Numbered from the stretch's first letter, positions 3,132 through 60,794 are shown. The stretch is 64,000 bases of DNA from Leidyana gryllorum EB-2025a (GCA_048772705.1 JBLWGC010000173.1:1-64000), one strand, 5' to 3'. Made by a program: numbers and translations. Notes: generated by a model from the letters alone, not told the origin.

Positions 3132-5180
3132 ATGCTGAACGACGACATCTGGACCCAAATTCTGGCTTTCTTACCGCTATGGGAGCTGACAAAAGCGGCA
3201 GGAATCTCGAAACAGCTACACAGTATTCTTCACTCTGAGAACTCATTATTGGTTTCTCAACGCCTTTCTCTCAGAGCCTCACAGTGGGCCTGGGTTCAGC
3301 GCGCCTCTTGGTTTGAAGCGTGGCTTTGCCGATCGTGCCCTCACCTGGAGTCCTTGACCTGGACAGGACGCACATTCAAGCGACTGATATTCACTGATCT
3401 GCTACACAAGATGTCCCAATGGGGATTGCCGAGATTAACGGAAGCGACCATAGGCACCGTTTTCGAAAGTGGGGGGTCGTGGCAGACCCACACTTTCAGT
3501 TTCCCCAACCTGAAGTTTTTGGACATCTCAATGTCAGACCTCTCTGAAGGGTCGCTGCTTATCGATGCTCCGGAGTTGGAATGTTTAGTCGTCACAAGAA
3601 ACCAACTTCCTTTCATTCGCCACGATTTGGCGGTGGAGCTCTATAGGGCTGTGGGTGACGGCCGCAACGACCTGATTGTGTCGGTGACAAAGCCACACTT
3701 CAGGCATTGGGTGTTCAAACTTCACGACACCGCAGCCTCTGTGGCAAACGGGGGATGGCAGACATCGCCGTGTCTGGTGCAATATTTACCCGAGGCGCAG
3801 GATTGGGCGAGCGATCCAGTGGAGTTCCGAATCGGATTCACACACACGTGGCCAAAGTGCGCGAGGTGAGGCTTCCTGGAAGCACTGACTTACATTTCAT
3901 TCAGAGGGTCACAGAGGCTGTGGGAGTACCTCAGACGAGAATGGAGCGATCGGGAGCGCCATATGCATCCGCTGTGTCGCACTTTCCTGCGGAATGAGCC
4001 GTTCGTGATGAGAATATATTCACAACGGCTTGTGAACGAGACTCAAGAAGATGGCACTGTGCTGCGGCGCGTCTACTCGAACCTCGGATGGTTTCGGTTG
4101 GCCCGAACAAAGGATCTGGATTCACCCCCTCTCCGGTGGAGCGCACTCCCACTGACCGAACCTCCCGCTGTGTACCCTCCTCCGTACTTTGGATTGACGA
4201 GTGACAACACACTTTATCTGAGCGCAACCGACATTAAACATCCAGTGGAGTGGTCAGAGGTGACACGGGTTCTCTATGTCAACAACAACTCCACTCCGAC
4301 TCTGAGTGAAAGCGTACTCGAAGCTGTGCCCCTTCAGAATCTGAAGCGTATCGAATTACCTCTGGAGGGATGGGCGCTCGTTGAAGGACTGTGTGAGAGC
4401 GCGACCCCCGCCCATTGGCCCCCCGACTGTGTCCGGGTGCTATGCCTTCACACCCAACGGGATGGCTCACCGGAAGCGATGCGACGTTTGATTGAAAAGT
4501 GTCAAATTCAATATGTCGGTGTCACCGGAGTGCCGTCGAACATCGCGAAGTTGACTGACTGGTTTTTGGTTGGGCACTCCATTTGGCGACGGAGAGGCGT
4601 TCGGGTCCGTTTCGGTCTCCAAGCTGCAGCCCTTTTGCACTATCCGTGGCCTAAGGTCCAATTGGAACTCGTTTCGGGACTCTATACCGATGCCACTCTC
4701 GAGGCTGTGCTGAAATACATCGGGTGTTCTGCTGAAGAGATCGGTCTGTGTCTGAGGGCTCAGACTGCCGACCATCCAGAACAATGGACAGAGCTGCGAG
4801 AAAGAAGTGTCCACGCTGAGTCAACACTTCCCTCGAACACTCATTACTACAGCGTTCCAAAGGCCTTTGTCAGTCAGTGGTACGCTGAAATGTTGGAAGG
4901 GACATTGCGAGAGGCTCAGACCTCCGTCGGCGGAGTGTTCGACTTTATCGCCCATTTTTACACAGACGATTGGTGGTTCGGGCGTGCTTTGTTGAATCAG
5001 CGCTACAGAGAATTAGAGTATTTGGACCTTCTGTTAAGCTTACCGGCTGTCTGTCCCGCGTCGCTGTACGAAGAGGTGTTCCCGCGAAGGGAGAAGAAAT
5101 CCAGAACTTCAAGATTACTGCCTGCGGGGCTTTTACATTGTGCGAGTCATCTGTGGTCAAAATGGAAACAACCTTCTTGA
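3132..5180 (+). CDS. F-box/LRR-like protein, copy 2 (exons 3132-3865, 3905-5180)
   Basis: Paralog of 466-2514 with the same intron (3866-3904) and 32 amino-acid differences counted from the ORF translations. Confidence 0.75.
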
Positions 5181-6295
5181 AGTTCCCCGGTCAACGGCTT
5201 TCTTTGCTGATCACTTCAGACAGAGTGAAAATCAGTCTCGATGAGCTCTACGGTTAGATAAAAATACGACCACTACTGCACGTGTAGTCAAATGTTGTGC
5301 AGATGAACACGAAGTAAGACTTCCGGATCGGGAGCACTGAGCAGTCGAATGTCAGCAGCTGTGAGGTCCACACCACAGTGATGTAAGTGGTTGCTGAAAG
5401 TCAATAAAGTGCCTTATAGTATGGTGTTGACGAGGTTCGAGACCTCAAAGCATTGCGTACGGCACTTGATGTCTATTCTCGATCTCTGTGCTTACTACAC
5501 GACTTACAGGCGGACTCTCAGTGTCGTCTGCTCATAGCGTTCCATTCCGCGTCCGAAAGCCATTCGCGGAGCACAGGGTTTGTCGTATTTTTGCATATAT
5601 CGAGCACCACTGATCCCGGCGGGACATTACAGCTTTGGCTACCTGGTCGAGCAGGCAGGCGCACGGAGGGTGCGCGGTCCTCAGTTCGGTGACGATTCCA
5701 ATACAATGAGAGTGGCGTGTGTCAGCCTCTACCGACTCTGAAGGGCGTGACGGTGTCGGGTCGTCTCCACTGCCACATATCGTAGATATGCTTAACTTCA
5801 TCCGACCCCCCTCGATTGCGCTTTCCGAACTCCGCTGCAGGACACCGTCAACCCGCACAATCAGATCATTCGCGTTGTGCTGGAGTCCGTCGGCCGACGA
5901 GAGATCGAGTTTTAGGCCGCCAGGGAGACGGAGGAGTCGCGACAGCGGTTTCCGAAAGCAGTCTGAAAGGACGCGCTTCTGGCGTCAGGAGCAGACCCGC
6001 CCGCAAGCGTCTCCCCGATGCACAAAGCAACGCGAGTGAGACTCGGTGAGGCAGTTTGCCAAAGACGGCCGGTCACCTACTTGTGCCGACACCCCGAAGT
6101 CAGAAGGAAGTGGCCAGTCGGGAGCTGAGAGCATTCATAGTCGTGTGCGTCCAACATTTGTGGTAACAGTATGAGGGGACGAAGTTGTTCAACGTCACTC
6201 CTTCACATTCAATTTGTACATCCATCCAATATCTGGAGGCATTGTTGTGATCATTGGCATTAAATACGACTGGATTTGCAGTCGTAAATTTAATT

Positions 6296-35910: not shown

Positions 35911-37959
35911 TCAAAAACGCCAGCGAGGAACAACAAAGAAGGGCTGTTCATTGCCGACACTGTATGTCTCCGTGAGGTCGGAATCAACGTAGAAGAGAGT
36001 AAAGGTGTCACGTAATCCTCGAATTGGGTGAACTTTCAATGCTGTCTTGACACCTGTGGTGGTTTTCACCCAGACCCAAGACATTTCAGATTTGCGCTCG
36101 AGGGCCTCGGCACACTGCTCGGCGAAGGCCGCTGCGCGAAGGTATTGGGACACAGCCGGGGGTGGGATCAAGTGCCTCGCGGAGACTGTGGCCAGTGCGA
36201 CATCTGATGTCTGTTCAGAGACTGCTGATGCGTGAGCGATAGATTCCTTTGCGGTTTTCACTTCGTCTAGTGGGGCCGTCACTTCCGGGATGAACCATGC
36301 ATAGACTCGCTTGGCCATTCCAGGAGTTATCATAGGGAGCTTCAACATTTCTTCGTGTAACGCGTCGGCGAGGATCACCGATTCCGATGACAGGGACTCC
36401 GAAGGCGGCTTGGCCGCGAGCAAGTAAGCAATCAAGTCGATTTCGTCCTCGATCATATGTTTGAGTGTGTTAACAGTGAATTCGGTGGGGGAAGGTTGAG
36501 TATTGTAATACCTCTGAAGTACCCTGGCAGAAATCTGCTCACGAGTTATCTCCCTGAAAATCCAGTCGTCCGATTCGGTCTCCGATTCCCCCCCATTCAG
36601 TGAGTCCGATTTCGGCGTCTCGATTACCCATTTGTATTCCGAGACCCCATCCAGGGAGTCCGATTTGTCTATCTCGGCTACCCATTTGTCATGCAGGAGC
36701 TCCATGACATATTCGTGGATTCTGGTGTACTTGTGAAACACAAGTTGCTGAAGGAGGGCGGCCGGATCTTCTTCAACTGATTGGAGAGGGGCCACAACAG
36801 GACCAATACCCGCGTGGAAGTAGCGCACGGAACAGAGGCCGTTCCAATCCACCACAAGCTCAAAATCGGTCCCCAACACTTTGTTCGGCGCCGATAAGAC
36901 GATTTCTTCGAGAAGTCTCTCCCTTTCAACATCGGACAAAATCGCCAAGTCCTCATCTTGTGCGATGCGTCCGAGCACGGGGTCGTTCTCACTGAAGAAG
37001 AACGACAACGGCCAGACTTTCTGGGCAAATTCAGACATCTTGACGTGTCTGTAAAAAGATGCATTGAGCAGGAACAGGTCCTGTTCCGTGCCCTCCTCCA
37101 CCTGCAAACCCTTCTCGCCCGATGTCGCTATGACGCTACAACCCTTGGGCACTTTTTTCCAGACATTCTTGGGGACTTGTTCTCGGCAATGATCGACCTC
37201 ACTCGTGGAGAGGATTGCGACAACTTCTTTCGCTTGCAGCGGATTGTACGCCACAACTAAGGCCGTATCTTGGGCGGAATCCTTCACCACAAGTTGATGA
37301 ACGCCATCAGCGAAAGACTTGGTGTACCCCGCATAGTTCTTCCATGACCAAGCCTGGTGCTTCTCTCGACACAGTTTCACCCCGCTACCAGGTTTCGAAC
37401 CGGTCACGTCGTCTGCTCCAGATGGACAGAAGCCAGCGATCTCGGCATACAGAGCAAAACGCAACCGAACCACGTCAGGTATATTTGGATGAAACGTGTC
37501 GGCTAAGGACTCCATTGTGTTCTCATAAGCTTTCCAGCCCCACTTTGCCTTCAAAACGGCCATCATAGTCTCAGCCAATCCGCTAACTGAGCTCTCTCCA
37601 CGACCACTCGTTTGACAGTGCGAACTGATACTATCCCTCACCAGCTCCTTAATGAACTCGTGTGGAGGGGTTGCGGGTTCACGGCGCAGCTGCTGCAACA
37701 GAGCCCCGCGGACAGACGGCTTGATAACCTTATACGCGCCTGATTCACGAAGCCAAGTCCTAGTCTCCTCAGGTATCAAGTTCATCACATTCCCGGGCAG
37801 GGTGACCGCGCCGGTCTCCGCGTTGTTTGCAATGGTGGTCGCGTCGAAACCAAGTCCAAACACGTTCAAAAGCGATGACCAGAAGACCCCGGAAAGCTTT
37901 ACTTCAGCAACTCCATGTTGGACAACCTTCATCCCGCCAAAAAAAATACAGCCGTTCAT
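35911..37959 (-). CDS. Tandem-family protein, divergent member 1 (682 aa)
   Basis: Long single ORF. SLADTFHPNIPDVVRLRFALYAEI and RERLLEEIVLSAPNKVLGTDFELVVDWNGLCSV align by eye with FLADSLGPLIPARVRSRFCRYLEM and RVELFSEITHDLPDRMVDTKVGLRVAPNGSCKV of the 43309-45357 protein. Confidence 0.8.
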   Translation of the reverse strand: MNGCIFFGGMKVVQHGVAEVKLSGVFWSSLLNVFGLGFDATTIANNAETGAVTLPGNVMNLIPEETRTWLRESGAYKVIKPSVRGALLQQLRREPATPPHEFIKELVRDSISSHCQTSGRGESSVSGLAETMMAVLKAKWGWKAYENTMESLADTFHPNIPDVVRLRFALYAEIAGFCPSGADDVTGSKPGSGVKLCREKHQAWSWKNYAGYTKSFADGVHQLVVKDSAQDTALVVAYNPLQAKEVVAILSTSEVDHCREQVPKNVWKKVPKGCSVIATSGEKGLQVEEGTEQDLFLLNASFYRHVKMSEFAQKVWPLSFFFSENDPVLGRIAQDEDLAILSDVERERLLEEIVLSAPNKVLGTDFELVVDWNGLCSVRYFHAGIGPVVAPLQSVEEDPAALLQQLVFHKYTRIHEYVMELLHDKWVAEIDKSDSLDGVSEYKWVIETPKSDSLNGGESETESDDWIFREITREQISARVLQRYYNTQPSPTEFTVNTLKHMIEDEIDLIAYLLAAKPPSESLSSESVILADALHEEMLKLPMITPGMAKRVYAWFIPEVTAPLDEVKTAKESIAHASAVSEQTSDVALATVSARHLIPPPAVSQYLRAAAFAEQCAEALERKSEMSWVWVKTTTGVKTALKVHPIRGLRDTFTLFYVDSDLTETYSVGNEQPFFVVPRWRF

Positions 37960-38929
37960 GATGCAAACCTGGCAGCCCGCACGGTTGAGACTTTGACATT
38001 CAATTGTAGTGGCCTTTTTGGCTCAATAGAAGTATACCCAATACCCGCAGCTCACCCCCAAAGACCGATTGGAGTCCTTTCAGTGAGTTCCGCCATCGCC
38101 ATCACGAGCCATGTGATTAGTGAACAGGGAGTGTGTAGCCCTAGCTAGGTGTGACACAACCGTTAGGGTTAAACTACTGCTTTGGTAGAATTTTTGTTTT
38201 TGGATTGCATGCTATGATATGATCTAGTGTTCCGGCCGGGCTGACACGGAAACACCGCGTCGACAAACACGCACGTGTGCTTGGCACTGACTGAATCTAC
38301 TTCATTGATTGAACTGCAGGATGGCTAGAGATGGACTCAGAAGCAAGTCAGGAACTGATCCAGAAGCAGATCAAAGCCCTTCTGTTGACCTACCAGCAGA
38401 TCCGGCCGATAATCAACCGGTACAACTAATACCGGGCCAGCCATGTCTCCAAGTGATGGGGGATGTGTGTGCACACACACTCCAATCCCGCCCGCATCGA
38501 CGAGGAGAACACGCACCAATGTCTTGTGCTGCTCACTCGGGCCGCAGTCAGCTGGGGAGTGTTGAGATCTCGTCGCGATCATTGACCTGACCGTTGATTT
38601 CGCAGCCGCCGTAGATTGTCCAGTAGTTTTGCACTATGCGCTCTCTGTTTGACCAATGGACGGATTCTTCCACGCAGAGCTGCCGCTCAGATGTCAACAG
38701 AGAAGGGTCTCCATTATCGGTCACGCAGCCGAGCGCTTCTATCGTGATTGGGGAATTATCGGTTTTCGTGTAGCGTACTACTGAATGACGGAGAATAGAG
38801 CGACAATCTGATGGGTTGCCATTTCGGTTATATTTTGTGCACACATCACATATCTGAGGTAACAATTTTTGATTGATACTTGAGCTACATGCGTTAAGAG
38901 CAAACGTGTGTTGTTTCATGCGCCCGGGC

Positions 38930-41044
38930 TCATAAAATCGAGCATTTGCGTGGCCGGCTCTTCTTCGGTACTTCGAGCAGTAAGTGTTCTTCGCTTGAGG
39001 GATTATCGGATTGGTTGCCCTCGTGGTGGATGCTCGACGCACATTCGCTTTCAGTTTCTGCATATACCACCGGCTCGTAGTCAGGCGGCATCCGCTCGTA
39101 CTCGTGTTCCACGTGCTCATCTTCATGTAAGGTCTCCTCGCGGTCGGGAGGCAGACTTGGCAGATCGTTGTTAGTGTTTGACCTTCGCACTTTCCCATGT
39201 TTCCTTGCTGCTGTGTTAAAATCTATCTTACACCGCCAGGGTTGGGGTTCTGGTTGTCCAGGAGGCGTTATGATGCAGATTATTTCGTTATCCCTCCATG
39301 AACAAACTTCGCAGCTCAGATTGCTGCGACCGACGTCTTTTCCAAACTGCTGTAGATGCATTTTCGCGCAGTAGTCGAGAGTGGCCCGGTGCCAGGGGGC
39401 ATGTTTCACCTTGATGGTGAAAAGCACAGAGTTACCTGCCCCGTCCACCAACAGGATCTGTACATCGCCAGCAGCTGTCCGGCCACGTACCATCAGCCAT
39501 GGCTGATGGCCGTTCAGTCTCACTGGGGGCCGCCAGCCGACCTCGTCCAACGTTCGGAGGCTCATTCGGGGATGGTCGGCACCACGCTCGGGGTCATAAA
39601 CAAAATGGCTCATGACGGTGTGATAGACGGGTCCCGAGACAGCTCTCTCTTGCAACAGCGCGTCTTGGACTCTTGAGAAGAACGGGAGCTTACCATCCCA
39701 CGGCTGGCCAACCAACAGTAATTTTTTCTGTCGATTCAGTCCGTTCCAAGTTGCCTTGAGTGGCTTCCCGTTGGGGCCCATTTGGTACAGGAGATTCATG
39801 AAAGCACCGTTTTGCACAGCCTCTTTACCGCGTGTGATCGGGAAGCAAGTCAGCGCTCTCAATATCGCTAGTCTCCGGGATGCAATCTTTCGACAGATGA
39901 GAGGGGCCTGTGACACGTCTAAGAAGTTTTCCTCCCACTCGTTATGTTCATTAACGAATTGTACTTTGCAACGGCCATTTGGAAGTACTCTCAACCCCAC
40001 ACCCTCGTCCACCCTTCGATCATTGATGTTGTGGGTCAGTTCAGAGAATATGGCCACACGCGTCTCGGGAGTCATGCCCTTCGTCAGTCCACTCGGCAAA
40101 GAGCAGGTCGGCCCGAGGCGCTTCGACGAGCTCGACAATGCGTCAGGGTTGAGATAAATCCCGGCCTTGTGAGGTTTCTTCGCTCGCCAGCCCCACACCT
40201 TGTGGAAACGTACCTTCGCTGTCTGACCTTTCTCCAATTTTGTCCACACAGAACACATTGCCGCCGGCAGTCCATACTCTCTAGGAGAGTTGCGGAGGAT
40301 CACCTCCTTTTTCATCGTCTCGTTGTAGACCACAGCGAAGAGGTACTTATCATTATCCTCGTTATACACTGACATAACGTGGATCTTCGGCGGCCCCTCG
40401 CGGGTGTATGAGTAGTAATTCAGTTTCCTCCGATGGTCTCGCCATGGGCGATCCTTCACCTCGTGCAGCTGGGTTAAGAGCGGGTAGAAATCTCTGGGCA
40501 GCAACTCTATCATGTCGAGATATCGGCAGAACCGCTGCCGGATGTCCTTGGGAACCGATGGACCGAGTGAATCCCTAAGAAATGACATTGATAACCACTT
40601 GTTGATGTATCCCATTCGCTTCAGAGACAAAAGACGCAGTCGGTATCGAGCCCTCAAGTCTTCCGTTGCCTCAATGGGAGTGCCTCTTTGGTGCAATTGA
40701 TGAATATCGTAACCTTGATTGGTTATTGGCCGCTCCTGGAACCAAGGATTCTTATTGAACTCTTGCAGAAGCCGCACCATGTAGTTCTTTGGGGATTCTC
40801 GGCCTCCGAGCTGTCGCTTCTCCAACAGAAAGAGACCAGTGAGAGTGTTGCTCAGAGCCTTTCTATCCGCCAACCCGCCTGGCCTCAACGCGGAGTCTGG
40901 CACTTGCTCGAGCAAGTGTTGCCATTCCGAGGGATCCGCACCCACCTCGAACTGTGCTACCGCGAAGACAATCAGTTCCCTTAGACTCGTGAGTTGAGCC
41001 CCAGCCCGAGTCTCACGGCATCTTGTAAGCCTCACGATTGCCAT
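38930..41044 (-). CDS. Tandem-family protein, member 2 (~704 aa), polybasic + CaaX tail (PKKSRPRK-CSIL)
   Basis: ORF extends to 41161; start placed at MAIVRL (41044) by similarity to paralog N-termini. Clear block similarity to 43309-45357. Confidence 0.85.
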   Translation of the reverse strand: MAIVRLTRCRETRAGAQLTSLRELIVFAVAQFEVGADPSEWQHLLEQVPDSALRPGGLADRKALSNTLTGLFLLEKRQLGGRESPKNYMVRLLQEFNKNPWFQERPITNQGYDIHQLHQRGTPIEATEDLRARYRLRLLSLKRMGYINKWLSMSFLRDSLGPSVPKDIRQRFCRYLDMIELLPRDFYPLLTQLHEVKDRPWRDHRRKLNYYSYTREGPPKIHVMSVYNEDNDKYLFAVVYNETMKKEVILRNSPREYGLPAAMCSVWTKLEKGQTAKVRFHKVWGWRAKKPHKAGIYLNPDALSSSSKRLGPTCSLPSGLTKGMTPETRVAIFSELTHNINDRRVDEGVGLRVLPNGRCKVQFVNEHNEWEENFLDVSQAPLICRKIASRRLAILRALTCFPITRGKEAVQNGAFMNLLYQMGPNGKPLKATWNGLNRQKKLLLVGQPWDGKLPFFSRVQDALLQERAVSGPVYHTVMSHFVYDPERGADHPRMSLRTLDEVGWRPPVRLNGHQPWLMVRGRTAAGDVQILLVDGAGNSVLFTIKVKHAPWHRATLDYCAKMHLQQFGKDVGRSNLSCEVCSWRDNEIICIITPPGQPEPQPWRCKIDFNTAARKHGKVRRSNTNNDLPSLPPDREETLHEDEHVEHEYERMPPDYEPVVYAETESECASSIHHEGNQSDNPSSEEHLLLEVPKKSRPRKCSIL

Positions 41045-43308
41045 ATGGGCTGGGAAAATAATTTTCAGGTAACCGCTGCCGTGGCGGTCATACATGTCAC
41101 ACTCCAACTCTGGTCTATAAGACTTAACCCTTGACGTTACATATTGAACCATGATCACCACCCTTATTCAGCTTAGTCAACCGAAATGTCTCCCTTGGGG
41201 ACGGTAAAAGAGCGGCCGGGGATACACGGACACGTGTGTGCGACGTAATTACATGTTCGAGTGCTTCAGACTAGAACTATGCATCAGTCGGTGATACCTT
41301 TGATGAATAGCAATAAGAAGTCGGCGACTTGAATGTGCTGAGGAATGAACTTCCATGATCCAAATTTGATGTTTCGGCAATTGCGTGGAGTTCTACTCAC
41401 CAACAACCAAAACAAAAGTCCCGCTGACAGACAGAGTGCACATGACCCTTTGGATCACCCCATCTCGAACGTTCTGCAGGGTGGCATGCTGCCCTCCCAC
41501 ACTCGTGTTCACCTAATCGGCGTGCGAATATAACATCTGCTGTCTGCGCTGCTACGGAAGAACTGCACTTGTGCAGAATAGCCCATCTAGTTTTCTCACA
41601 GACGACCGACGGAGTCTCGTCATTGCTGCTGTTTCAATTCAATAACCACATTGAAGAGGATTGGACCGGAGACCGCTAATTTGCCGATGACCACTCTGCT
41701 TGTGGCCAGCTGCTCTTTACACTCAAGTTGGTACTTCCAACGGTACAATGTTAGTATACATGGGATTCGGGTGAGCTGTGGTTGAAGCAGCATTGACTTG
41801 GGAGGAAAACCTCGTCCCTGGTGCCGTCAAACGTTGTGGTTGTACGACAGTCGGCTGAAATCGAGGGTGCGGTGGTGATTTTTCCCAGTTGGCGGATGGA
41901 TTCGTTCCTCTTCATCATTTGTATCTTTTCGGAGGACGGTCGAAGTGTCGGACAACTCCGATGTTGAGGAGCGACACACCTGGTACCGGGGTGTGGATCA
42001 TGATTATCCCGGAGAAAGTATTTGGTGCCATGCCAGTCTTCTCCGGTCACCCTCATTTCTTGTCCTTTTTAATAAGTTCGTTTGAGATGTGACGGGGGCT
42101 CAGCGATAAGATTGACTATGTTTCAGGAAATTATACTGAGGGAAGAAGAGCTAGCCCCATGTAGTTGAGGAGTAAAGGACTACCTGCTGATGAGTTATTG
42201 AAATCGGGGTGACCAGAGTGTATGTAGCTACCAGAGGGGGACTTCAGTGGGTGGGAACGAGAGCCAGGCGTGGGGGCGGCGGAGTCAGAACTCTTCCCAT
42301 CCTCGGTTCTGGACCGCCCTCTCGCCTTCTTCGCCAGTACTACCTGTCCTGTTGACTGACTGAGACGCCTCCAGCTGTGGACCATCTTAATGCCAAAGAT
42401 CGGTGTTTACCTTCATTTTGGGAGAGTGTCTCAGGGCGCCTGTGGACGATATTAAATGCCAAAAATCGGTTGTTCACCTTCATTCCGGGAGAGGGTCTCA
42501 GGGCAGTGCTTGACGCTTCAACCTCAGAATGGCGGGGACGTGAGTCCCGAGCCATCAAATGGGACTGGGGATCATCTGTGTCGAATCACCCAATCGCAGG
42601 AGGAGCGGACACGCACTTGTCACCAGCATGCGCTCACATGGAAGGTGCATCTAGTTGCCGGGGTGGAGCGAGTGCGCCCAATGCTTGTGTCAGTGATGCG
42701 CAGCAGAGATAGAGGTCTCAGTGACATATCACCAGCGCCACTAAGAGTCGTGTAAGGCGGTGATAAGAATCGTGTAAGGCGGTGACTGACGTTCGGATCG
42801 ATTCAATCGATCTTCGCGCTGGGGGTGCCGATGAGCATCTGACAAATGCCGGCTGTCAGCAAACCGAGTACCGGCCAAGCACCTTGAACCCGTTTCCGTC
42901 TCTCAATCCCTCCCTCGTCGCAGTGGACATTGTGCTCGGAAGGCTGCCCGCCCAAGTGGGACAGCTGCGCCACAGACCCCTATCGGCTACCAATGCGGGC
43001 GAAGCCACGCGAGAAATCGAGTCGATGATTGTGAACTTCTCCAACGGCATGAGGCTGCAATCCGGGGCCAGCCGCAGTCGACTGAATACTGAATGATGGT
43101 TAGTCTCCCTTTGACCCAAGTGGATTGAGTTTTCTCATATCATAAAAGTAGCCAATCGGCAATGTTTTTGGGTCAACTGAGAGATGTTGTGCTAAGAGAT
43201 ACACTTTCTTGGCGACAAAGATGATGCCGGAGTATATATCCACAGGAAGACGCTATTCACGCTGTTCGAGTCAGTAACAATTAAACACCACTTTTCACCT
43301 CCATACAG

Positions 43309-45357
43309 TCACAAAATCGTGCACAAAGACGAACACGGACACGAGCAACCGCCCCCTCTTGGGGACTCAACCTCGTCGAACAACACGTTTCCCTCTCTCG
43401 TCTCGGAAGTCACTTCTACTGCCAGTAACGCAGGGGCGGCATGATCCCTCGTCACCGTCCAGCGCTTCACAGTCCACTGCTGCAATGGATCTGGGCTGGG
43501 ATAGGGTGTGAGGAGCACAATGCGGCCTTCCTCCCATTCGGTGATCACCCCCTCCATGTGAGGAACCTCTTCGTCGTTTGCCCGCGATATGTGGTGTCGG
43601 AATATGTGGTCAACTGCATCATCGAGGAGCTGCGACTTCAAAGGAGGATTGGAACTTGTCACCTTCAGAGTCATACTTTCACCCTTCTTATTGGCCAACA
43701 AGAGTTTCAAAATGCCCTGTGGAGTGCGTCCATGGACCATCAACCAACGCACGTCCTCCGAGATCTGTTTGGGCCGCCACTCTACTTCTAAATTTGAGAC
43801 ATTGAAAAAGGAGAGGGCAACGGCGGGTCTAGTGGCTCTGTGGCTCTCCTGAGACCCGAAGTGGCTCAACACTCTCGTGAAAATGTGGGTGTCCATGGAA
43901 GGTTGTTGGAGTAGTTGGTCACGGACATGAGCAAATTGAGGCTGCTGCTCCTTGAAGGTCCTGGCGACCTCAAGTAGGGCCCCGACCGCCAGAAGTTTAT
44001 CCAATCGCAGATCATCTTTCGGTGAGAAAGCGTCTCCGTGAAGGAGTTCCATACAAATCGCATTGGTCCAAATGTGCTCGGGGATTGATTTCGTGACATT
44101 AGTCGGTAGCGGCTTTGTGGCGAGCCATGCATTGACTCGCTGCCGTGTATCGTCTCTTTCTCGCTTCAGAAGAGAATTGATTGCCCGTGTCCTGGAGCGA
44201 TCCAACACTTTCTCTCCCCAGTCGTCCTCCGGGGTTTTAAAGAGCACTTTGCAGCTGCCATTCGGAGCAACTCTCAGGCCCACTTTGGTGTCGACCATGC
44301 GGTCCGGGAGGTCATGTGTAATTTCCGAGAACAATTCTACACGGTCTTCAATGCTCCAAGAGTCGAGCAGACTGCCCAGCACCCAATTGTCATTTTCGTT
44401 CGCCAACGAGACGAGATGACTGGGCCAGTCCTGGTGCATCTCCCCGCCAGGCGCGCTGGGCCCACTTTTCTCAAGGCCCTCAGGGCTCAGGTACAGTCCA
44501 TTTCGATTCTGGATGGCGGCTGCTTTGGTCCACCCCGCCATGTCATTGTGAGAGACCCCTGCCGCTTCACCTCTGTGCAGGCGACCCCACAACTCAGTAG
44601 AAGAGACGGGGAGTTCAGTCGATATGTGGTGATCACGAATGACAAGCTCTTTGTCGTCTGTCTCGTTATGGAGGACAGCGAAGACGTATTTCTGCTTCTG
44701 CCGACAGTAAACCGACATAACGTGAACCACAGGGGGGCCAAGGACACTGTATGAGTAGTAATCGAGGTTTTTGTCCATGTCTCGCCATGGAAGACCCGTT
44801 TTTTCATGCAGATGGAGTAAGAGAGGAAAGAAGTCCGTTGGCAGAAGCTCCATCATTTCCAAGTATCGACAGAATCGTGAACGAACCCGAGCCGGGATCA
44901 ATGGGCCAAGCGAATCTGCCAGGAACGACATAGTTAGGTATTTGTTGGCGTAACCCAATCGATTCAATACCGACAGACGCAGTCGGTAAGGACTCGTCCG
45001 CTCGGGTTGGTCAGCATATGTCTGCAACATCTCGGACACCTTTCGCTTATGGCGTGTGAGCGGGTGCCCCGAATTCATATTCTTCACCACTTGCTGTACA
45101 AATGTGGCAGGCGGAATCTCCGCGCGCTGTCGGCACTCCAAGACAAAGAGTCCTTGCAAAGTCTCGAGGAAGGGCCCCCAATTGTTGATGTGTTTATGTT
45201 CTTCATACCAGGATGTGCTCTTGAGTAACGTCATCCAATCTGGGGTCGTGGGTACAATGTCCAGACACTCTGCCATCATTGATATGACTTCTTTGAAAGT
45301 CGTCACTCTAGCGAGAACCGATGGTCCTCGGTGCGGCACTCTGACATGGCTCATCAT
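43309..45357 (-). CDS. Tandem-family protein, member 3 (682 aa), Cys-rich + CaaX tail (CSCPCSSL-CTIL)
   Basis: Long single ORF sharing YRLRL..GY.NK.L.MSFL.DSLGP, RFCRYL.M.ELLP.DF.PLL, YYSY...GPP..HVMSVY, VGLRV.PNG.CKV.F and WLMV.GRT..G with member 2. Confidence 0.85.
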   Translation of the reverse strand: MMSHVRVPHRGPSVLARVTTFKEVISMMAECLDIVPTTPDWMTLLKSTSWYEEHKHINNWGPFLETLQGLFVLECRQRAEIPPATFVQQVVKNMNSGHPLTRHKRKVSEMLQTYADQPERTSPYRLRLSVLNRLGYANKYLTMSFLADSLGPLIPARVRSRFCRYLEMMELLPTDFFPLLLHLHEKTGLPWRDMDKNLDYYSYSVLGPPVVHVMSVYCRQKQKYVFAVLHNETDDKELVIRDHHISTELPVSSTELWGRLHRGEAAGVSHNDMAGWTKAAAIQNRNGLYLSPEGLEKSGPSAPGGEMHQDWPSHLVSLANENDNWVLGSLLDSWSIEDRVELFSEITHDLPDRMVDTKVGLRVAPNGSCKVLFKTPEDDWGEKVLDRSRTRAINSLLKRERDDTRQRVNAWLATKPLPTNVTKSIPEHIWTNAICMELLHGDAFSPKDDLRLDKLLAVGALLEVARTFKEQQPQFAHVRDQLLQQPSMDTHIFTRVLSHFGSQESHRATRPAVALSFFNVSNLEVEWRPKQISEDVRWLMVHGRTPQGILKLLLANKKGESMTLKVTSSNPPLKSQLLDDAVDHIFRHHISRANDEEVPHMEGVITEWEEGRIVLLTPYPSPDPLQQWTVKRWTVTRDHAAPALLAVEVTSETREGNVLFDEVESPRGGGCSCPCSSLCTIL

Positions 45358-45763
45358 AACGGATCCAAATAAAAGAATTGAGTTTTGGCCGACAATCGAC
45401 GGTGAAGAACGACCCCGACCGCAGCTCGGTGCGGTTCACCACCCTCAATGATTTTGAGCACTTCCCAGTCATATAGTCAATAAATTGTCTCTTATTGTCA
45501 CCACCTTCAAAGTGTCTTGAGACTTACACATCTGCCAAAGACAGACTCAGCGGCCGATGGTCCGGGAGAGGAGGTAGGGGGAACTCGCACGTGGCCCTTC
45601 AATTGACGATACATATCTCGAAAGTGTTCGACGAGGTCAATCTCCAGGCGCTAGGGATTGAGTGTCGTATTTGAGGGTTCCTAGATCATTTGGTATGCCA
45701 GTAGTGAACTGGGCGCTGTCAGAGCTGGGTGCAACGAGCATTTGGTTTAAGTCGTTCTCTCCT

Positions 45764-47427
45764 TCAAGTTATAAAAAGGTCACAGCACACACGTGTTTGT
45801 ATGTTCCCCCGGTCTCCTACGAAATTGGGTGGCTGTCCGGTTGGCGCCCACGAGGCGTACAGTACTACCCTATGACTATTTTTACCATTAAGCGACGTCA
45901 CCAGTACTATTTCCTTGCGGAGATCAATCATTTCTACCCTGGGTACCTGATCATCATTGAGTGGATGCAGAGGCGCCAAAGGTCGATGTCGGAAGCCGAC
46001 CTCTAATAGCCTTGAGACCTCACCAATGAGTAAAATCTGGTGTAGAATGTATTCCCGCGCTCGTAGCCTAATCTCGCGTGATTGGTCCTCTTTGCCAGTC
46101 CAGCATGAGAGACATGTGCGTGTGCCACCTGCCCGCCATCTGGCTGCCCCATCGCTTTTGAGACCCAAGTCACAGTGCCCCATGTAATCAAGAGAAGCAT
46201 CTCCCGCACTCAGTAGCATCAGCTGCTCCAGCGGTGGGAGATGAAGGGTCACTTTCCCCAGAAAGTCAAGGCTGCTATCCTGCCCAATATGCCCGTGGGC
46301 ACATTCGAAGGGATTCCGATTGGGGGTGGAGCCCGATCTTGGCAGAATCCACAGCTTCTGGAATCGTTGAAAGGAATCGTTCCCGAGTCCGTTCCTACTT
46401 CCATCAACTCTTCGGTTTGGGCGACCGGCTCTATAATTCCTTTATGCTCGTGACCCTCCGTCAGATGACCCAGAAGGAGTCTCATTAAGGGAGCATGGAT
46501 TAGCAGGGCTCTAAATCCCGCCGAGTATTTATCAGGACGTGTATGGCACAAGTACAGAGCGAAATGCCTTCCCGTCTCCCAAGGAGCTTATCTAGCACAC
46601 CAACGCTGACTAATACTTTCTGAAGTACCCCTCTTTGTCTGTATCCACGACCAAAGCGCCCTCCAACGATGATCGGACCGCCTTTGGATCCAATGAGGTG
46701 ACGTCTGCTTTTGGCTGAGCCGAACAGCGTGATGTTGGAGTAGCACATCCCTCGTTTCCATTGAACCCGTTTGCGGGTAGCCTTGCGCAGGGACTCCAAG
46801 TTCACGTTAGCATACTCAACGAGAAGAAAGGACCGCGGCCGTATGGAGAGGTTGTCCAGCTGGCTCGGGGGAGGTGCTCCCCCCGCTTCTCTGTCTCGGG
46901 ATCAGAAATAACCTCACCCCTCCCACCATGTCGATGTATTGAACAAAGCGCATCCTGATAGGCTGAGGGATGTCGTAGGAGAGCATACCGGCCACTGCTC
47001 GTACGGGCAGAAGGCCAGCGGTCTCATCATAGTGTTGTTCGTCGACAGTCCATCTGCGCAGCCACCGGCAAAAGTGCTGACACGAGGAGTCCCGTGTTTC
47101 CGATATTGAACTCTCTGTTTCGAGCGTAACATTGCTATTGAGTTCCCCGAACTCCGAGTTGTAACGGTCAACTATGGCTCGGCGGAATTCCTGGGGATCG
47201 GTGTAGTGACCGCTATCATGTAACAAGCTGTAACATTCCGCCAATGTCGCCATTACAGGTTTGAACCGTTCCAAATCCATTCTGCCCGTTTGAATCCAAC
47301 TTTCAACATCAGCCGTCGTCAGCCAACACAATGCGTTCCCTATCTGCGCCACCACCATTGAGGCGACTTCTGTACCTCGCGCCAAGGCGCCTCTCCGTCT
47401 TGACCGTTGGACTCTGATGTGGGCCAT
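45764..47427 (-). pseudogene. Degenerate tandem-family member (frameshifts and stops after ~170 codons)
   Basis: MAHIRVQRS N-terminus and IPQPIRMRFVQYIDMVG motif. Downstream fragments in different frames include QTEELMEVG, which matches QTEELMAVA of 47985-49124. Confidence 0.65.
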
Positions 47428-47984
47428 AGTGCGTCAAAAATTTTTCCCATGGATCACTCTTCCCCTATGGCTTTGGGGTTTGGCGCGAGCGTCCTTCGGA
47501 GTGTGTCTAAGCTGAGCAATTCATCTCGGACCATTCTGCACAGAATCGTATTTCTCAGCAGTGAACCGGCTACGAATGTTTCTTTTGGCGTCACAGTAAT
47601 GTCGTCTGCAGTCAAACGTAAGTATCGAGGGCGGACATGTTCCATTTCGCGACTGAAAGGGCTCAAGGTACATCAGCGTGATGGTCACTGAACACCAATT
47701 GCAAAGAATGCACAATTCCAGCTCGGTTTGCACTCATCCGATACCTTGAAGTTCGTTCCGGGCCATAGACTGAATCGGGATTCACTTAGATTAGTTTCTG
47801 CAGAGCGCAGGTATGTGTTTGTTGGCCGGTGTCTCCGTGGTGACCGGCCCGTCAGTTCAAATGGGAGATGCATACCGAAATAAAAGAAGTCACACAAATG
47901 GTTCATCTTTTCAGAGTTGCCTGAACCTGTAGTTTGGTGTCGCTCTGAGATTGGGCTAACTGAGTTACACCCCATAACGATCTC

Positions 47985-49124
47985 TCAGCTCCGATCAATA
48001 GGCAAGAAACCTCCGGTGTAAGTATTCTCCGACGGATCCCACAGCTGCAACATTTTCCCGCGTCTCCTTCCGTTCGCAGTCCCCTCGACCCAGTCGTGGA
48101 TCCTGCCATGGGGGATCTCGTTCCAGCCCCTGTTGTGGACCACAGGGTGCGAAAGAGCCGCATCGAGGGTGTTCCATGTCCTGTTCTCGGGTGCATCCTC
48201 CAGATTGAGGGATACGATTCGTCCATAAGGCCCGATCACTAACATTTGGCATGGGCTCAATTTGCTTTCCCCCAAAATCGCCACATACGATCGGGGCAGA
48301 ACGTCGACCTGGAGTGGTCGCAAGTTAATGTTCCATATCTTGGTGAAGTTCGATTGGCCGTTTGGGTCTGATGTCGTCGTACAGCGTGACAGGACCAGCT
48401 TGAAGATCTCCGGTTTAATGTCGGGGACCAGCCGCAAAAGTGCATCCCTGACATGAAGAAAAACTTCGCCCCTTTCACGGTGTGGGAAGGCGTTGGCAAC
48501 AGCCATCAACTCCTCAGTTTGCGATATGGCCTCTGGTATTGTGATTGATGAAGCCTGTGTACCCTGTTTGCCCGCAAGCAGTTTCGCCAACACGGCATCT
48601 TCGAAAATTTCTCTAGACTGCGCGGACAACTTTCGCGTAGAGTTGTTGCGGTCGAGGGCGTCCTGAATTTCTAGTCGAACACTGTCCATTGTGTGAAGGA
48701 GGAGTGGGGCACAGTCAAGATTCAGTTGCGAAGTTTGGGGCCACTCAGGATGGGCATTCCATTCCGCCACGAGCTCGCCTTGTTCCGACAACCCGAGTCT
48801 GTATCGTAGTGGGGTGGACCCTCTCCCCGGTTTGGGCTTGAGACATTTCTCGATTTCCCAGTGGACTGTATCGTGGTCCAAAGGGTTAATCATCTTGAGC
48901 AGGAAGTCAGCATTCAGGTTCTTTGTCTTTCCGACCCCTGGCTCGACAAGATTTGGCACAGAGCGGAGGTGATCGTTCTGGACGGATTCCGGTGAAGTAA
49001 CTTCTTCAAGTGATACGGAGGGTACGGCACATCCGCTGCTCTGGGTGAACATGCCTGATGCAAGTCTCGCGCAATTCATAAAAGCATTTTGGCTTCTTCG
49101 CGGTTGCACTCTGATTGGTGACAT
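47985..49124 (-). CDS. Internally deleted tandem-family member (~379 aa: N-terminal peptide fused to C-terminal half)
   Basis: MSPIRVQPRR start, then ELMAVANAF..FLHVRDALL..EIFKLVLSR matches LLEVARTF..FAHVRDQLL..HIFTRVLSH of member 3. Lacks the RFCRY block and the CaaX tail. Confidence 0.65.
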   Translation of the reverse strand: MSPIRVQPRRSQNAFMNCARLASGMFTQSSGCAVPSVSLEEVTSPESVQNDHLRSVPNLVEPGVGKTKNLNADFLLKMINPLDHDTVHWEIEKCLKPKPGRGSTPLRYRLGLSEQGELVAEWNAHPEWPQTSQLNLDCAPLLLHTMDSVRLEIQDALDRNNSTRKLSAQSREIFEDAVLAKLLAGKQGTQASSITIPEAISQTEELMAVANAFPHRERGEVFLHVRDALLRLVPDIKPEIFKLVLSRCTTTSDPNGQSNFTKIWNINLRPLQVDVLPRSYVAILGESKLSPCQMLVIGPYGRIVSLNLEDAPENRTWNTLDAALSHPVVHNRGWNEIPHGRIHDWVEGTANGRRRGKMLQLWDPSENTYTGGFLPIDRS

Positions 49125-50666
49125 TGTGACTTCAGCAATTGGATAAATCCACAATAAATTACAATTTTTTGGATGTCGACGACAAATAAGACATAACAGC
49201 AGAATGCTCTCAAATTGCTCTGGACGACCGGAGTGGCACGGAACCGACCGCTAAACTCCACAGTGACACTTCACCGCCCCCCTCGAAGACACGTAGTGTC
49301 CACCGGCGTAGATAAGGCGAGCTTGCCACAACTGCTGCTCCACACCCTCCAAAGCGATGTCCCCCATCGGTACGTCGTAGCCGCAACGTCATCAAGGTGG
49401 TCACTAAAACGAGTTTCTTCTCGTCCAGAGGGCCCTCGTAGGGTCTTCTCCTGGTGTCCTCCCTCTCAGAGTGCGAAGGCCTCTGTCGGCTTTTCTGAGG
49501 TCCGAGTGAGTCGTCGAAACGCGACTCTTTTCTGAAGAAGCGGGTGGGTGGCCGGCCACCATCGTTTGTCGACTTGTTGAGACACAAAACACCTCTGCGC
49601 CGCCTTCAGGTCTCCCACTATCTCGATGTATCGGCAAAAGCTCGTTGAATCTCCTTTTTGGAGCCCCCTGGATGAGTATGTCGGCGGCCATAACCTACAA
49701 AGGGATCCAGCGGCCTGTATTCGTGGTATCCAGAGTCTGAGCCTCCCATCCATCCCAGAGCTACAGATGTTTCCGAGCACCCGTGAGCGGCCCTGTCCAC
49801 CGAGTATGTAGGCACAGAGCGGAGGTGATCGTTCTGGACGGATTCCGGTGAAGTAACTTCTTCAAGTGATGCGGAGGGTACGGCACATCCGCTGCTCTGG
49901 GTGAACATGCCTGATGCAAGTCTCGCGCAATTCATAAAAGCACTTTGGCTTCTTCGCGGTTGCACTTTGATTGGTGACATTGTGACTGCAGCAATTGGAT
50001 AAATCCACAATAATTAACAAATTTATGGATGTCGACGACAAATAAGACATAACAGCAGAATGCTCTCAAATTGCTCTGGACGACCGGAGTGGCACGGAAC
50101 CGACCGCTAAACTCCACAGTGACACTTCACCGCCCCCCTCGAAGACACGTAGTGTCCACCGGCGTAGATAAGGCGAGCTTGCCACAACTGCTGCTCCACA
50201 CCCTCCAAAGCGATGTCCCCCATCGGTACGTCGTAGCCGCAACGTCATCAAGGTGGTCACTGAAACGAGTTTCTTCTCGTCCAGAGGGCCCTCGTAGGGT
50301 CTTCTCCTGGTGTCCTCCCTCTCAGAGTGCGAAGGCCTCTGTCGGCTTTTCTGAGGTCCGAGTGAGTCGTCGAAACGCGACTCTTTTCTGAAGAAGCGGG
50401 TGGGTGGCCGGCCACCATCGTTTGTCGACTTGTTGAGACACAAAACACCTCTGCGCCGCCTTCAGGTCTCCCACTATCTCGATGTATCGGCAAAAGCTCG
50501 TTGAATCTCCTTTTTGGAGCCCCCTGGATGAGTATGTCGGCGGCCATAACCTACAAAGAGATCCAGCGGCCTGTATTCGTGGTATCCAGAGTCTGAGCCT
50601 CCCATCCACCCCAGAGCTACAGATGTTTCCGAGCACCCGTGAGCGGCGCTGTCGACCGAGTATGTA
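48955..50666. repeat. Direct tandem duplication, 2 x 856 bp (48955-49810, 49811-50666)
   Basis: Near-identical copies, each starting ggcacagagcggaggtgatcg and ending cgagtatgta. Confidence 0.95.
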
Positions 50667-50850
50667 GTCCGGTCAGCAGTGTGGTGAGAGGACGAATACT
50701 CTGTATGGGTTCAGCAATTACGGATCGATGCATAAATTAATAAGTGAAGACGATTGGTTGATGTGTGCGAGGCACGTTGGCTTCCATTTAGACGTTGAAT
50801 CTGAGGACGACTGTTGTCCCACAGGTCGTTTGGAAAGATTTCTTATCTTT
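49400..50850 (-). pseudogene. Fragmentary tandem-family pseudogene segments (approximate bounds)
   Basis: Frameshift-corrected reading gives AADILIQGAP-KEIQRAF-CRYIEIVG (family motif) in both duplicated units, and RPLTTLLTGL near 50690 resembles KALSNTLTGL / PFLETLQGL. Confidence 0.55.
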
Positions 50851-59077: not shown

Positions 59078-60794
59078 CTAAGCGCTCAGCCACTCGCTAT
59101 GTACCGGGCCTGCTGCTTCCTCATCTCGGCGCACGTACTCATGGGCTCCGAAACAATCTCTCTGTGCCTGGACCAAATTCAAAGGTAGTTCTGGGGCGCT
59201 CAATGTGTCCAAATAATTCAAACTCGCAGCCATTCCGGGAACTGAAGAGAAACAAAGGAACATGGAGTGCACAAAAAGCCTTTCGTACCCGGTACCCCGA
59301 CTGCTTGAGCAGTACACACAAGCTGACGGAGATACTTGACTCCCTGGCGCAACTCGTTCGCGAACCACGGGCTCACCAACAAGGTGTCCAGTCCTGGATC
59401 CGCCTTGTACGCTTCGTGGATACTCTTCAGAAAGTCCGCACGAATAATGCAACCACCAGTCCAGATCAGAGAGACCTTAGCCAGATCGATGCCGTACTGA
59501 TGCTTCTCACTTGCGGCCGACAAGAGCTTCATCCCCTGAGCATAACTGCAGATCTTGGCGGTGAGCAGAGCTGCGCCAATCTCCTTGTTGTCCAATCCGC
59601 AGCCCCTAGCCGTCATCTCCTCGGCTGTGGGTCGCACACCCTCCAAGGAGCCAACATCGGCTCGAGTCTTCCGCATCCCAGAAAGATATCGGCTATCCAG
59701 AGCTGCCGCAATCGTCGGACAGGGGATTGCTAACTCTGCCGCTTCCTGCACAGTCCATTTCCCGGTACCTTTGCTTCCAGCAACGTCCAAAACAGCATCA
59801 ACCAAATACTCAAATTTGTTCTTCGGGTCCTTCACCTTGAAAATCTCCGAGGTGATCTCAATCAGATATGATTTGAGCTGAGAACCGTCGGCATTCCAAG
59901 ACTCAAATACCCGTTGAATCTCGTCGTTCTTCCACTTCAAAACTTGTTTCATGAAATCGTAAGTCTCAGATATCAGTTGCATGTCACCGTACTCAATGCC
60001 ATTGTGGACCATCTTGACATAATTACCAGCACTACCCTTTCCCATGTATTCACAGCAAGTCATATCGTCTACGCCCTTGGCAGCAATCTTTGTCAATATG
60101 GGCTTCATGTGTTCATATGCTTCACTGTTGCCGCCAGGCATCAAAGAAGGCCCATGACGAGCCCCTTCCTCGCCACCGCTCACTCCCATAGCCATATAAT
60201 GGAGACCCGGATGTTTCTGAGCAATCTCCGATATCCGGCGGTCAGTATTCCGCCAATGTTCGTTTCCGCCATCGATCAGAATATCACCATCTTCCAAAAC
60301 GTTCACCAGCTGCTGGATCGTTGCATCGACACCCGCACCAGCTTGTACCATCATCAAAACCTTTCGCGGTTTCGTCAAACTCGCCACCTGTGCGGCACAT
60401 AAACAGGAAGACATGCCAAGAATTTCTTCTCAGGCAGGCACATGGCTCGATCATTTACCACAAGCAAAGTCCACATTCGCGTCGGAGACACAGAGCCCGC
60501 ACACGCACAAGCACAAACACGGGAACACATCACCAGCAACGGACGGGAGGGGGAGGACGATCCGTTGCGCTTAGGTCGGAAGGGTTTCGGAAGTTGTCAG
60601 CTTGCCGCCCTACTTACAAAATCAGTGATACTGTGGAAGCCGTGGAGCTCTAGGCCTTGTTTCTTAGCCTCCTCCACGGCCTCGTCGGTACGAGCTGCAG
60701 TGCGGTTGAAAGCTGCCACCTTGAAGCCTTTCTCAGCAGCATTCATGGCCAAGTTGCGGCCCATGACAGCCATGCCGATCACACCGAGATCCAT
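59078..60794 (-). CDS. PGD: 6-phosphogluconate dehydrogenase, decarboxylating (3 exons)
   Basis: DLGVIGMAVMGRNLAMN, DGGNE, GVSGGEEGARHGPSLMPGG, YVKMVHNGIEYGDMQLISE, KGTGKWT, GGCIIRA and NLVQAQRDCFGAH. Confidence 0.97.

Follow-up and report, generated by a model that had tools for sequence, protein, structure and literature searches.

The 64,000-nucleotide stretch analysed here (the window) forms the beginning of contig C173 (295 kb) of Leidyana gryllorum EB-2025a (GCA_048772705.1 JBLWGC010000173.1:1-64000). Its minus strand carries, between positions 35,911 and 50,666, an array of three full-length intronless genes, a truncated open reading frame (ORF), a decayed copy and an 856-bp tandem duplication. 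Sequence comparisons within the array and against large protein libraries indicate that the array represents a genuine protein family, not described before and without detectable relatives. Two of the full-length members end in predicted prenylation signals, and we favour, with a probability of about 0.55, the explanation that the array is a locus-restricted orphan family of a gregarine-like apicomplexan, encoding cytosolic proteins tethered to the parasite's own membranes by prenylation. The assembly comprises 15.5 Mb in 237 contigs, and the GC content is ~52% throughout the window. The components of the array are as follows.

35,911-37,959, minus strand: m1, a full-length, very divergent member of 682 aa, ending ...PRWRF.
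38,930-41,044, minus strand: m2, intact, 704 aa from a conserved Met at 41,044, starting MAIVRL.
43,309-45,357, minus strand: m3, intact, 682 aa, starting M-MSHVRV.
45,719-47,427, minus strand: psi, a decayed copy with an open N-terminal part followed by pieces in shifting frames.
47,985-49,124, minus strand: m4, a truncated ORF of 379 aa from a conserved Met at 49,124, starting MSPIRV.
48,955-49,810 and 49,811-50,666, minus strand: tandem units of 856 bp each, 98.5% identical with 13 mismatches.

A preliminary description of this DNA had proposed at least three intact single-exon ORFs of ~680-700 aa on the minus strand, one internally deleted copy and two or more pseudogene segments, giving the array a birth-and-death appearance. 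The three long ORFs are present at the positions listed, and m4, which lacks the central region, is the internally deleted copy. The frames of m2 and m4 remain open upstream of their conserved starts, to 41,161 (743 codons open) and 49,154 respectively. The 856-bp duplication copied the promoter region upstream of m4 together with its first 56 codons, producing a second start, MSPIKV, at 49,980. Psi and this duplicated 5′ end of m4 account for the proposed pseudogene segments; short FCRYIEIV pieces upstream of m4, considered as relics of a further copy, gave E values of 2-3 and were rejected as not significant on their own. With intact, truncated and decayed copies lying beside a nearly identical partial duplication, the birth-and-death appearance was borne out. 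No known RNAs or tRNAs were found inside the array.

The relationship between m2 and m3 is unambiguous. The two proteins align end to end, with 32% identity over 644 residues (E = 1e-90) and 36% in a global alignment, and both contain all three of the sequence blocks quoted in the preliminary description, LGPxxPxxxRxRFCRYLxM, YYSYxxxGPPxxHVMSVY and GLRVxPNGxCKV. To place the other copies, a hidden Markov model (HMM) built from m2 and m3 was used to search the complete set of stop-to-stop pieces from the six frames of the window. Its top three non-self matches were m4 (E = 7e-4), a fragment at 46,819-47,433 within psi (E = 1.5e-3) and m1 (E = 1.6e-3). All three belong to the array, share its minus-strand orientation and are collinear with the profile; the next match had E>2. 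Profile-profile comparison with hhalign aligned m1 with the m2+m3 profile over 295 collinear columns (probability 79%, E = 1.6e-5), covering the IPxxVRxRF, YxxY...VH, NxxxxKE and NGxCxV blocks; in the family alignment the identity of m1 is ~18%. By these three measures m1 is a member, but a very distant one.

The same comparison placed m4 on the C-terminal half of the profile (probability 62%, E = 7.7e-5). This result, together with the family alignment, indicates that m4 lacks the central ~215 residues: it keeps the N-terminus and the C-terminal half, without the region of the RFCRY and YYSY-HVMSVY blocks. The N-terminal part of psi consists of 203 open codons (46,816-47,427), starting MAHIRV and containing an IPxxIRxRFxxYxxM block; its first 170 codons are collinear with residues 2-169 of m3. 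A further piece in another frame (46,252-46,587) matches residues 175-220 of m4 (E = 8e-4), and the region 45,764-47,427 as a whole is a run of overlapping ORFs of 100-200 codons in shifting frames. The M-x-x-[IV]-[RK]-[VL] start attributed to most members was found in five copies, namely m2, m3, psi, m4 and the duplicated m4 start, and is missing from m1. Thus m2 and m3 are clear paralogues on sequence grounds, and the family also includes m1, m4 and psi, which are distant but match collinearly. Searches of the 15.5-Mb genome with m1, m3, m4 and the m2+m3 profile found the family at this single locus. No internal repeats were found within a family protein.

The long frames are most unlikely to be open by chance, with p ~7e-15 for an ORF of 680 codons and p ~1e-8 for one of the length of m4. 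Between m2 and m3 the proportion of synonymous differences (pS) is 0.74, at which synonymous sites are saturated, and that of nonsynonymous differences (pN) is 0.46 overall and 0.36 in the central block. Codon positions one to three show identities of 0.50/0.57/0.35, the pattern expected of long-term protein constraint. The saturated pS, the lower pN and the codon-position pattern together indicate that these duplicates are old and have been kept as proteins. The GC content by codon position (0.57/0.41/0.60) resembles that of neighbouring genes, which argues that the array genes are native. The preliminary description had the family turning over rapidly; the age of its main duplicates contradicts this. 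A ratio of nonsynonymous to synonymous substitution rates is not computable for m2 and m3, since their synonymous sites are saturated, and the young duplicate has just three differences, all nonsynonymous, in the 56 codons common to both tandem units (no synonymous difference was seen). The comparisons indicate that the array arose by old tandem duplications, with one recent partial duplication.

Small-GTPase-style lipid anchors had been ascribed to members of the family, and this part of the preliminary description holds, as predicted signals, for m2, m3 and, as a relic, psi; m1 and m4 have no CaaX box. The m2 protein ends in an acidic low-complexity tail followed by KKSRPRK-CSIL, with the CSIL box encoded at 38,933-38,944. 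The m3 protein ends GGGCSCPCSSL-CTIL, a Cys cluster followed by a CaaL box at 43,312-43,323, with four cysteines in the nine residues preceding CTIL. The six frames of the whole window hold 176 open pieces of 100 aa or more, and of these only m2 and m3 have CaaX-type ends. In psi an in-frame stop (45,764-45,766) is followed, ten codons on, by CTQL and a stop (45,719-45,733), the intervening stretch being a relic basic sequence, RRERLKPNAR. A CLMM box 40 codons downstream of the m1 end lies behind four in-frame stops and was taken as chance.

The 60-100 residues preceding the boxes do not align between m2 and m3, yet the box is kept. This retention, together with the relic in psi, indicates that the C-terminal box has been under selection in at least three copies. 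In each of these copies a second signal stands beside the box: polybasic in m2, Cys-rich (CSCPCSSL) in m3 and basic (RRERLKPNAR) in the psi relic. Two classical types of second signal are established, the polybasic one of K-Ras4B and the palmitoyl-Cys one of H-Ras and RhoB. Like K-Ras4B, m2 has a basic cluster directly before its CaaX box after a flexible, poorly conserved linker; like H-Ras and RhoB, m3 has a Cys cluster before its box after a flexible linker. The likeness ends there. Ras-superfamily and GBP/dynamin-like GTPases differ from this family, which has a body of ~600 aa and no P-loop, other G-domain motif or match to the Pfam Ras and GBP models. From their sequences the members are not GTPases, and the anchor alone is alike.

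In the favoured explanation, each protein would consist of a soluble alpha/beta body of ~600 aa with a conserved basic N-terminus and no secretion signal. A cytosolic prenyltransferase would attach a geranylgeranyl (or farnesyl) group to the Cys of the CaaL box of m2 and m3, and formerly of psi; Leu at the final CaaX position favours GGTase-I. The second signal, polybasic in m2 and palmitoylatable cysteines in m3, would then hold the protein at the cytosolic side of a membrane. As the second signals of m2 and m3 differ, the paralogues may be sent to different membranes, by analogy with K-Ras4B and H-Ras/RhoB to the plasma membrane or pellicle in one case and along a Golgi-derived or inner-membrane-complex route in the other. 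Lipidation and location are what we infer from these signals, and the further suggestion of a scaffold or adaptor role is a guess by default.

The genome contains genes for the beta subunits of farnesyltransferase (FTase; PDB E = 5e-40) and of Rab geranylgeranyltransferase (RabGGTase; PDB E = 3.6e-34). A third, divergent prenyltransferase beta-subunit gene, with an open frame of 453 aa, lies on another contig (C43:221464-222825) and may encode this organism's GGT-1 beta subunit. Compared with PDB sequences, this third subunit stands at roughly the same distance from the beta subunits of FTase, GGTase-I and RabGGTase. Apicomplexans prenylate few CaaX proteins, using FT, GGT-1 and GGT-2, and in Toxoplasma the three corresponding beta subunits are present and 27 proteins are prenylome candidates (PMC10470541). 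The present genome is alike in having three beta-subunit genes; unlike the non-GTPase members of apicomplexan prenylomes, however, the array proteins show no sequence kinship to any protein in the public collections searched, and their lipidation is a prediction. The prenylome of Plasmodium falciparum is reportedly a similarly small set.

Several observations weigh against the favoured explanation. The third beta subunit is not clearly of type I, its best PDB matches being to type-2 beta subunits (1e-18, versus 1e-10 for type 1). In exon-by-exon genome scans, which cannot show absence, an ICMT gene was not found, and an Rce1-like match was borderline. The a1 residue of both boxes is Ser or Thr and is not aliphatic. 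Anchoring is not family-wide, since m1, the third intact member, lacks an anchor. The N-terminus, rich in Arg and poor in acidic residues, might instead direct the proteins to an organelle, an odd combination with a CaaX end. Finally, the scaffold role is a default guess because the structure models are poor, as described below.

A more specific form of the prenyl-tethering explanation can be put forward tentatively. The family may represent a new fold serving as a lipid-anchored part of the gregarine cortex, with paralogues sorted by a swapped second signal (polybasic in m2, a Cys cluster in m3 and none in m1). We regard this as possible, at well below even odds.

The family was searched for relatives in libraries that include apicomplexan proteomes and gregarine transcriptomes; this genome's own proteins did not appear in them. 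There was no match in Pfam up to E = 1, in NCBIfam or PHROGs, in a profile search of PDB sequences, or in word searches with m3 and with m1. An exhaustive HMMER profile search of 1.84 billion protein representatives returned zero matches, and nothing was found in ESM Atlas feature searches with the whole protein and the central domain or in a scan of metagenome contigs. The absence of a recognised domain, as first described, is therefore upheld, with no confident match to a well-known family in Pfam, NCBIfam, PHROGs, PDB or the HMMER search. The members contain no P-loop GxxxxGK[ST], no HExxH and no shared CxxC motif. Structure prediction, suggested as a route to a fold or catalytic site, gave neither: two AlphaFold models had low confidence, with predicted local distance difference test (pLDDT) scores of 38 and 45, and the better of the two gave nothing above noise in structure searches. 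Secondary-structure prediction gives a mixed picture: the N-terminal part is helical, a four-strand meander spans the YYSY-HVMSVY block, the middle is again helical, and an alpha+beta C-terminal part precedes a disordered tail.

How much these negative results mean depends on how isolated the genome is. A 6PGD exon in the window (59,218-60,414), searched as a single exon rather than as a joined spliced model, shares no more than 49-54% identity with the closest database proteins, those of gregarine transcriptomes among them. In a tree it groups with insect eugregarines (Gregarina sp. and Protomagalhaensia; support 98/93) on a branch of 1.55 substitutions per site. These data indicate that the genome belongs to a gregarine-like apicomplexan without a close relative in the searched libraries. 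Because even a housekeeping protein is only ~50% identical to its nearest relatives, the missing relatives of the array say little about the lineage-specificity first proposed; and as paralogues within the locus are already at 18-36% identity, orthologues in such distant species would go undetected. The array might then be an extremely diverged branch of a known family, such as a CaaX-bearing GBP/dynamin-like GTPase or another enzyme, whose similarity lies beyond detection. The isolation and fast evolution of the genome, exemplified by 6PGD, are in keeping with this, and the structure models are too poor to rule out any fold. Of the explanations that compete with prenyl tethering of an orphan family this one survives best, though we consider it doubtful.

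The preliminary description had suggested that the proteins are host-interaction or immunity effectors. In such an explanation they would be secreted or delivered into the host, and their CaaX boxes lipidated by host enzymes, as occurs in host cells for some bacterial effectors. In favour of this, host-interaction genes typically form tandem arrays whose copies diverge and partly decay, the CaaX box is retained on diverged tails, and the family is undetectable outside this genome. However, no signal peptide or transmembrane segment was seen in any member by hydropathy, which was used in place of a dedicated predictor: the 19-residue Kyte-Doolittle maximum was 0.99-1.36, compared with 2.5-2.7 for neighbouring membrane proteins. 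Conservation starts exactly at the basic, non-hydrophobic start motif in five copies, which makes a hidden upstream signal exon unlikely. Furthermore, the duplicates are ancient and protein-constrained rather than fast-evolving, and the parasite has prenyltransferases of its own. A CaaX box is processed in the cytosol, and a location on the parasite's own membranes is favoured for this reason. The effector proposal is thus not supported, and we consider it unlikely.

Families of the var, rif and SRS type in other apicomplexans invite comparison, as they too form clustered copies with pseudogenes and partial duplications. Their members carry signal peptides and transmembrane or glycosylphosphatidylinositol (GPI) signals and are often subtelomeric. 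The present array differs in that its members lack such signals and its main copies are ancient, and no telomere repeat was seen at the contig start, 36 kb from the array.

It is also conceivable that the whole array is a graveyard of decaying, non-functional ORFs. Decay does occur here, as seen in psi and the truncated m4, but three 2-kb frames, each with the chance probability given above, are still open despite saturated synonymous sites, and their codon-position pattern is that of purifying selection; a graveyard is very improbable.

Three further features of the array bear on a possible link to mobile elements or lie in its spacers.

38,113-38,439, minus strand: a dispersed, solo-LTR-like (long terminal repeat) sequence of ~327 bp with TG...CA ends and, in several copies, a 5-bp target duplication.
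41,213-41,236, minus strand: a short motif ~170-190 nt upstream of the m2 start, consisting of CACGTG and then TCCGTGT...CCCGGCCG.
41,758-42,070 and 42,241-42,437, unstranded: stretches of the m2-m3 spacer that are 75% and 69% identical, respectively, to a tandem small-gene region on contig C82.

The 327-bp repeat, which does not belong to the family, is inserted 154 nt upstream of the m1 start. Copies on five other contigs (C204, C69, C7, C12 and C43) match it at 88-94% identity, indicating a young solo-LTR-like insertion; many of these copies are near contig ends or on short contigs. The 22-nt motif GTGTCCGTGTNTCCCCGGCCG (41,213-41,234) has eight exact occurrences in the genome, compared with none for a reversed control. 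Its 22-nt core is common to the region of the 327-bp repeat, the region upstream of m2 and a second repeat family adjoining a Ty3/gypsy-type pol remnant, the two repeat families being retroelement-associated (95% match, E = 9e-6). One copy, on contig C38 (about 5750-5771 of the examined stretch), stands 253 nt before a 770-aa ORF with reverse transcriptase (RT), RNase H and integrase domains of the Ty3/gypsy type. The repeat between m1 and m2 and the retroelement-associated motif upstream of m2 might suggest mobile-element cargo or a domesticated element protein, but the family is confined to one locus, contains no domain of RT, integrase or transposase and is not flanked by long repeats. The array is old, and the LTR-like repeat, with a target duplication of its own, entered it recently. 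This is the least probable of all the explanations considered.

A CACGTG hexamer occurs upstream of m1, m2 and m3 (at 38,272, 41,231 and 45,588, 187-313 nt upstream). It was considered as a promoter mark of the family and rejected: the window contains 23 such hexamers against 20 expected, m4 and psi lack one, and the m1 copy lies inside the young 327-bp repeat.

Sequence comparison identifies the two spacer stretches within 41,758-42,437 as relics or dispersed repeats and not as family members. They match the 3′ parts of tandemly duplicated small genes (C82:102000-108200), which comprise two ORFs of 195 aa and two of 184 and 225 aa, with a signal-peptide-like start and one hydrophobic span. 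A 416-aa ORF in which PVQVQ(A/T) is repeated in a long series lies in the same C82 stretch (3180-4430). Elsewhere in the window, two tandem ORFs of 405 aa (1297-2514 and 3963-5180) are 95% identical, have no Pfam match and each carry CACGTG 118 nt upstream; this pair is a young duplicate of another gene.

Among the large branches of the Apicomplexa the gregarines have been studied least, and genes restricted to this lineage must encode its peculiar cell biology, with giant extracellular cells, a folded pellicle and gliding. To such genes the array adds a family of large proteins without a recognisable domain. Its importance is limited, predicted membrane tethering being its one functional lead. 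Within that limit, two paralogues with complete predicted two-signal prenyl anchors, of the two classical types, provide a concrete handle. Lipidation of m2 and m3, if true, would add to the very few proteins known from the prenylome of apicomplexans, and the tentative assignment to the gregarine cortex, if true, would make the family a case of natural retargeting by tail exchange outside the small GTPases.

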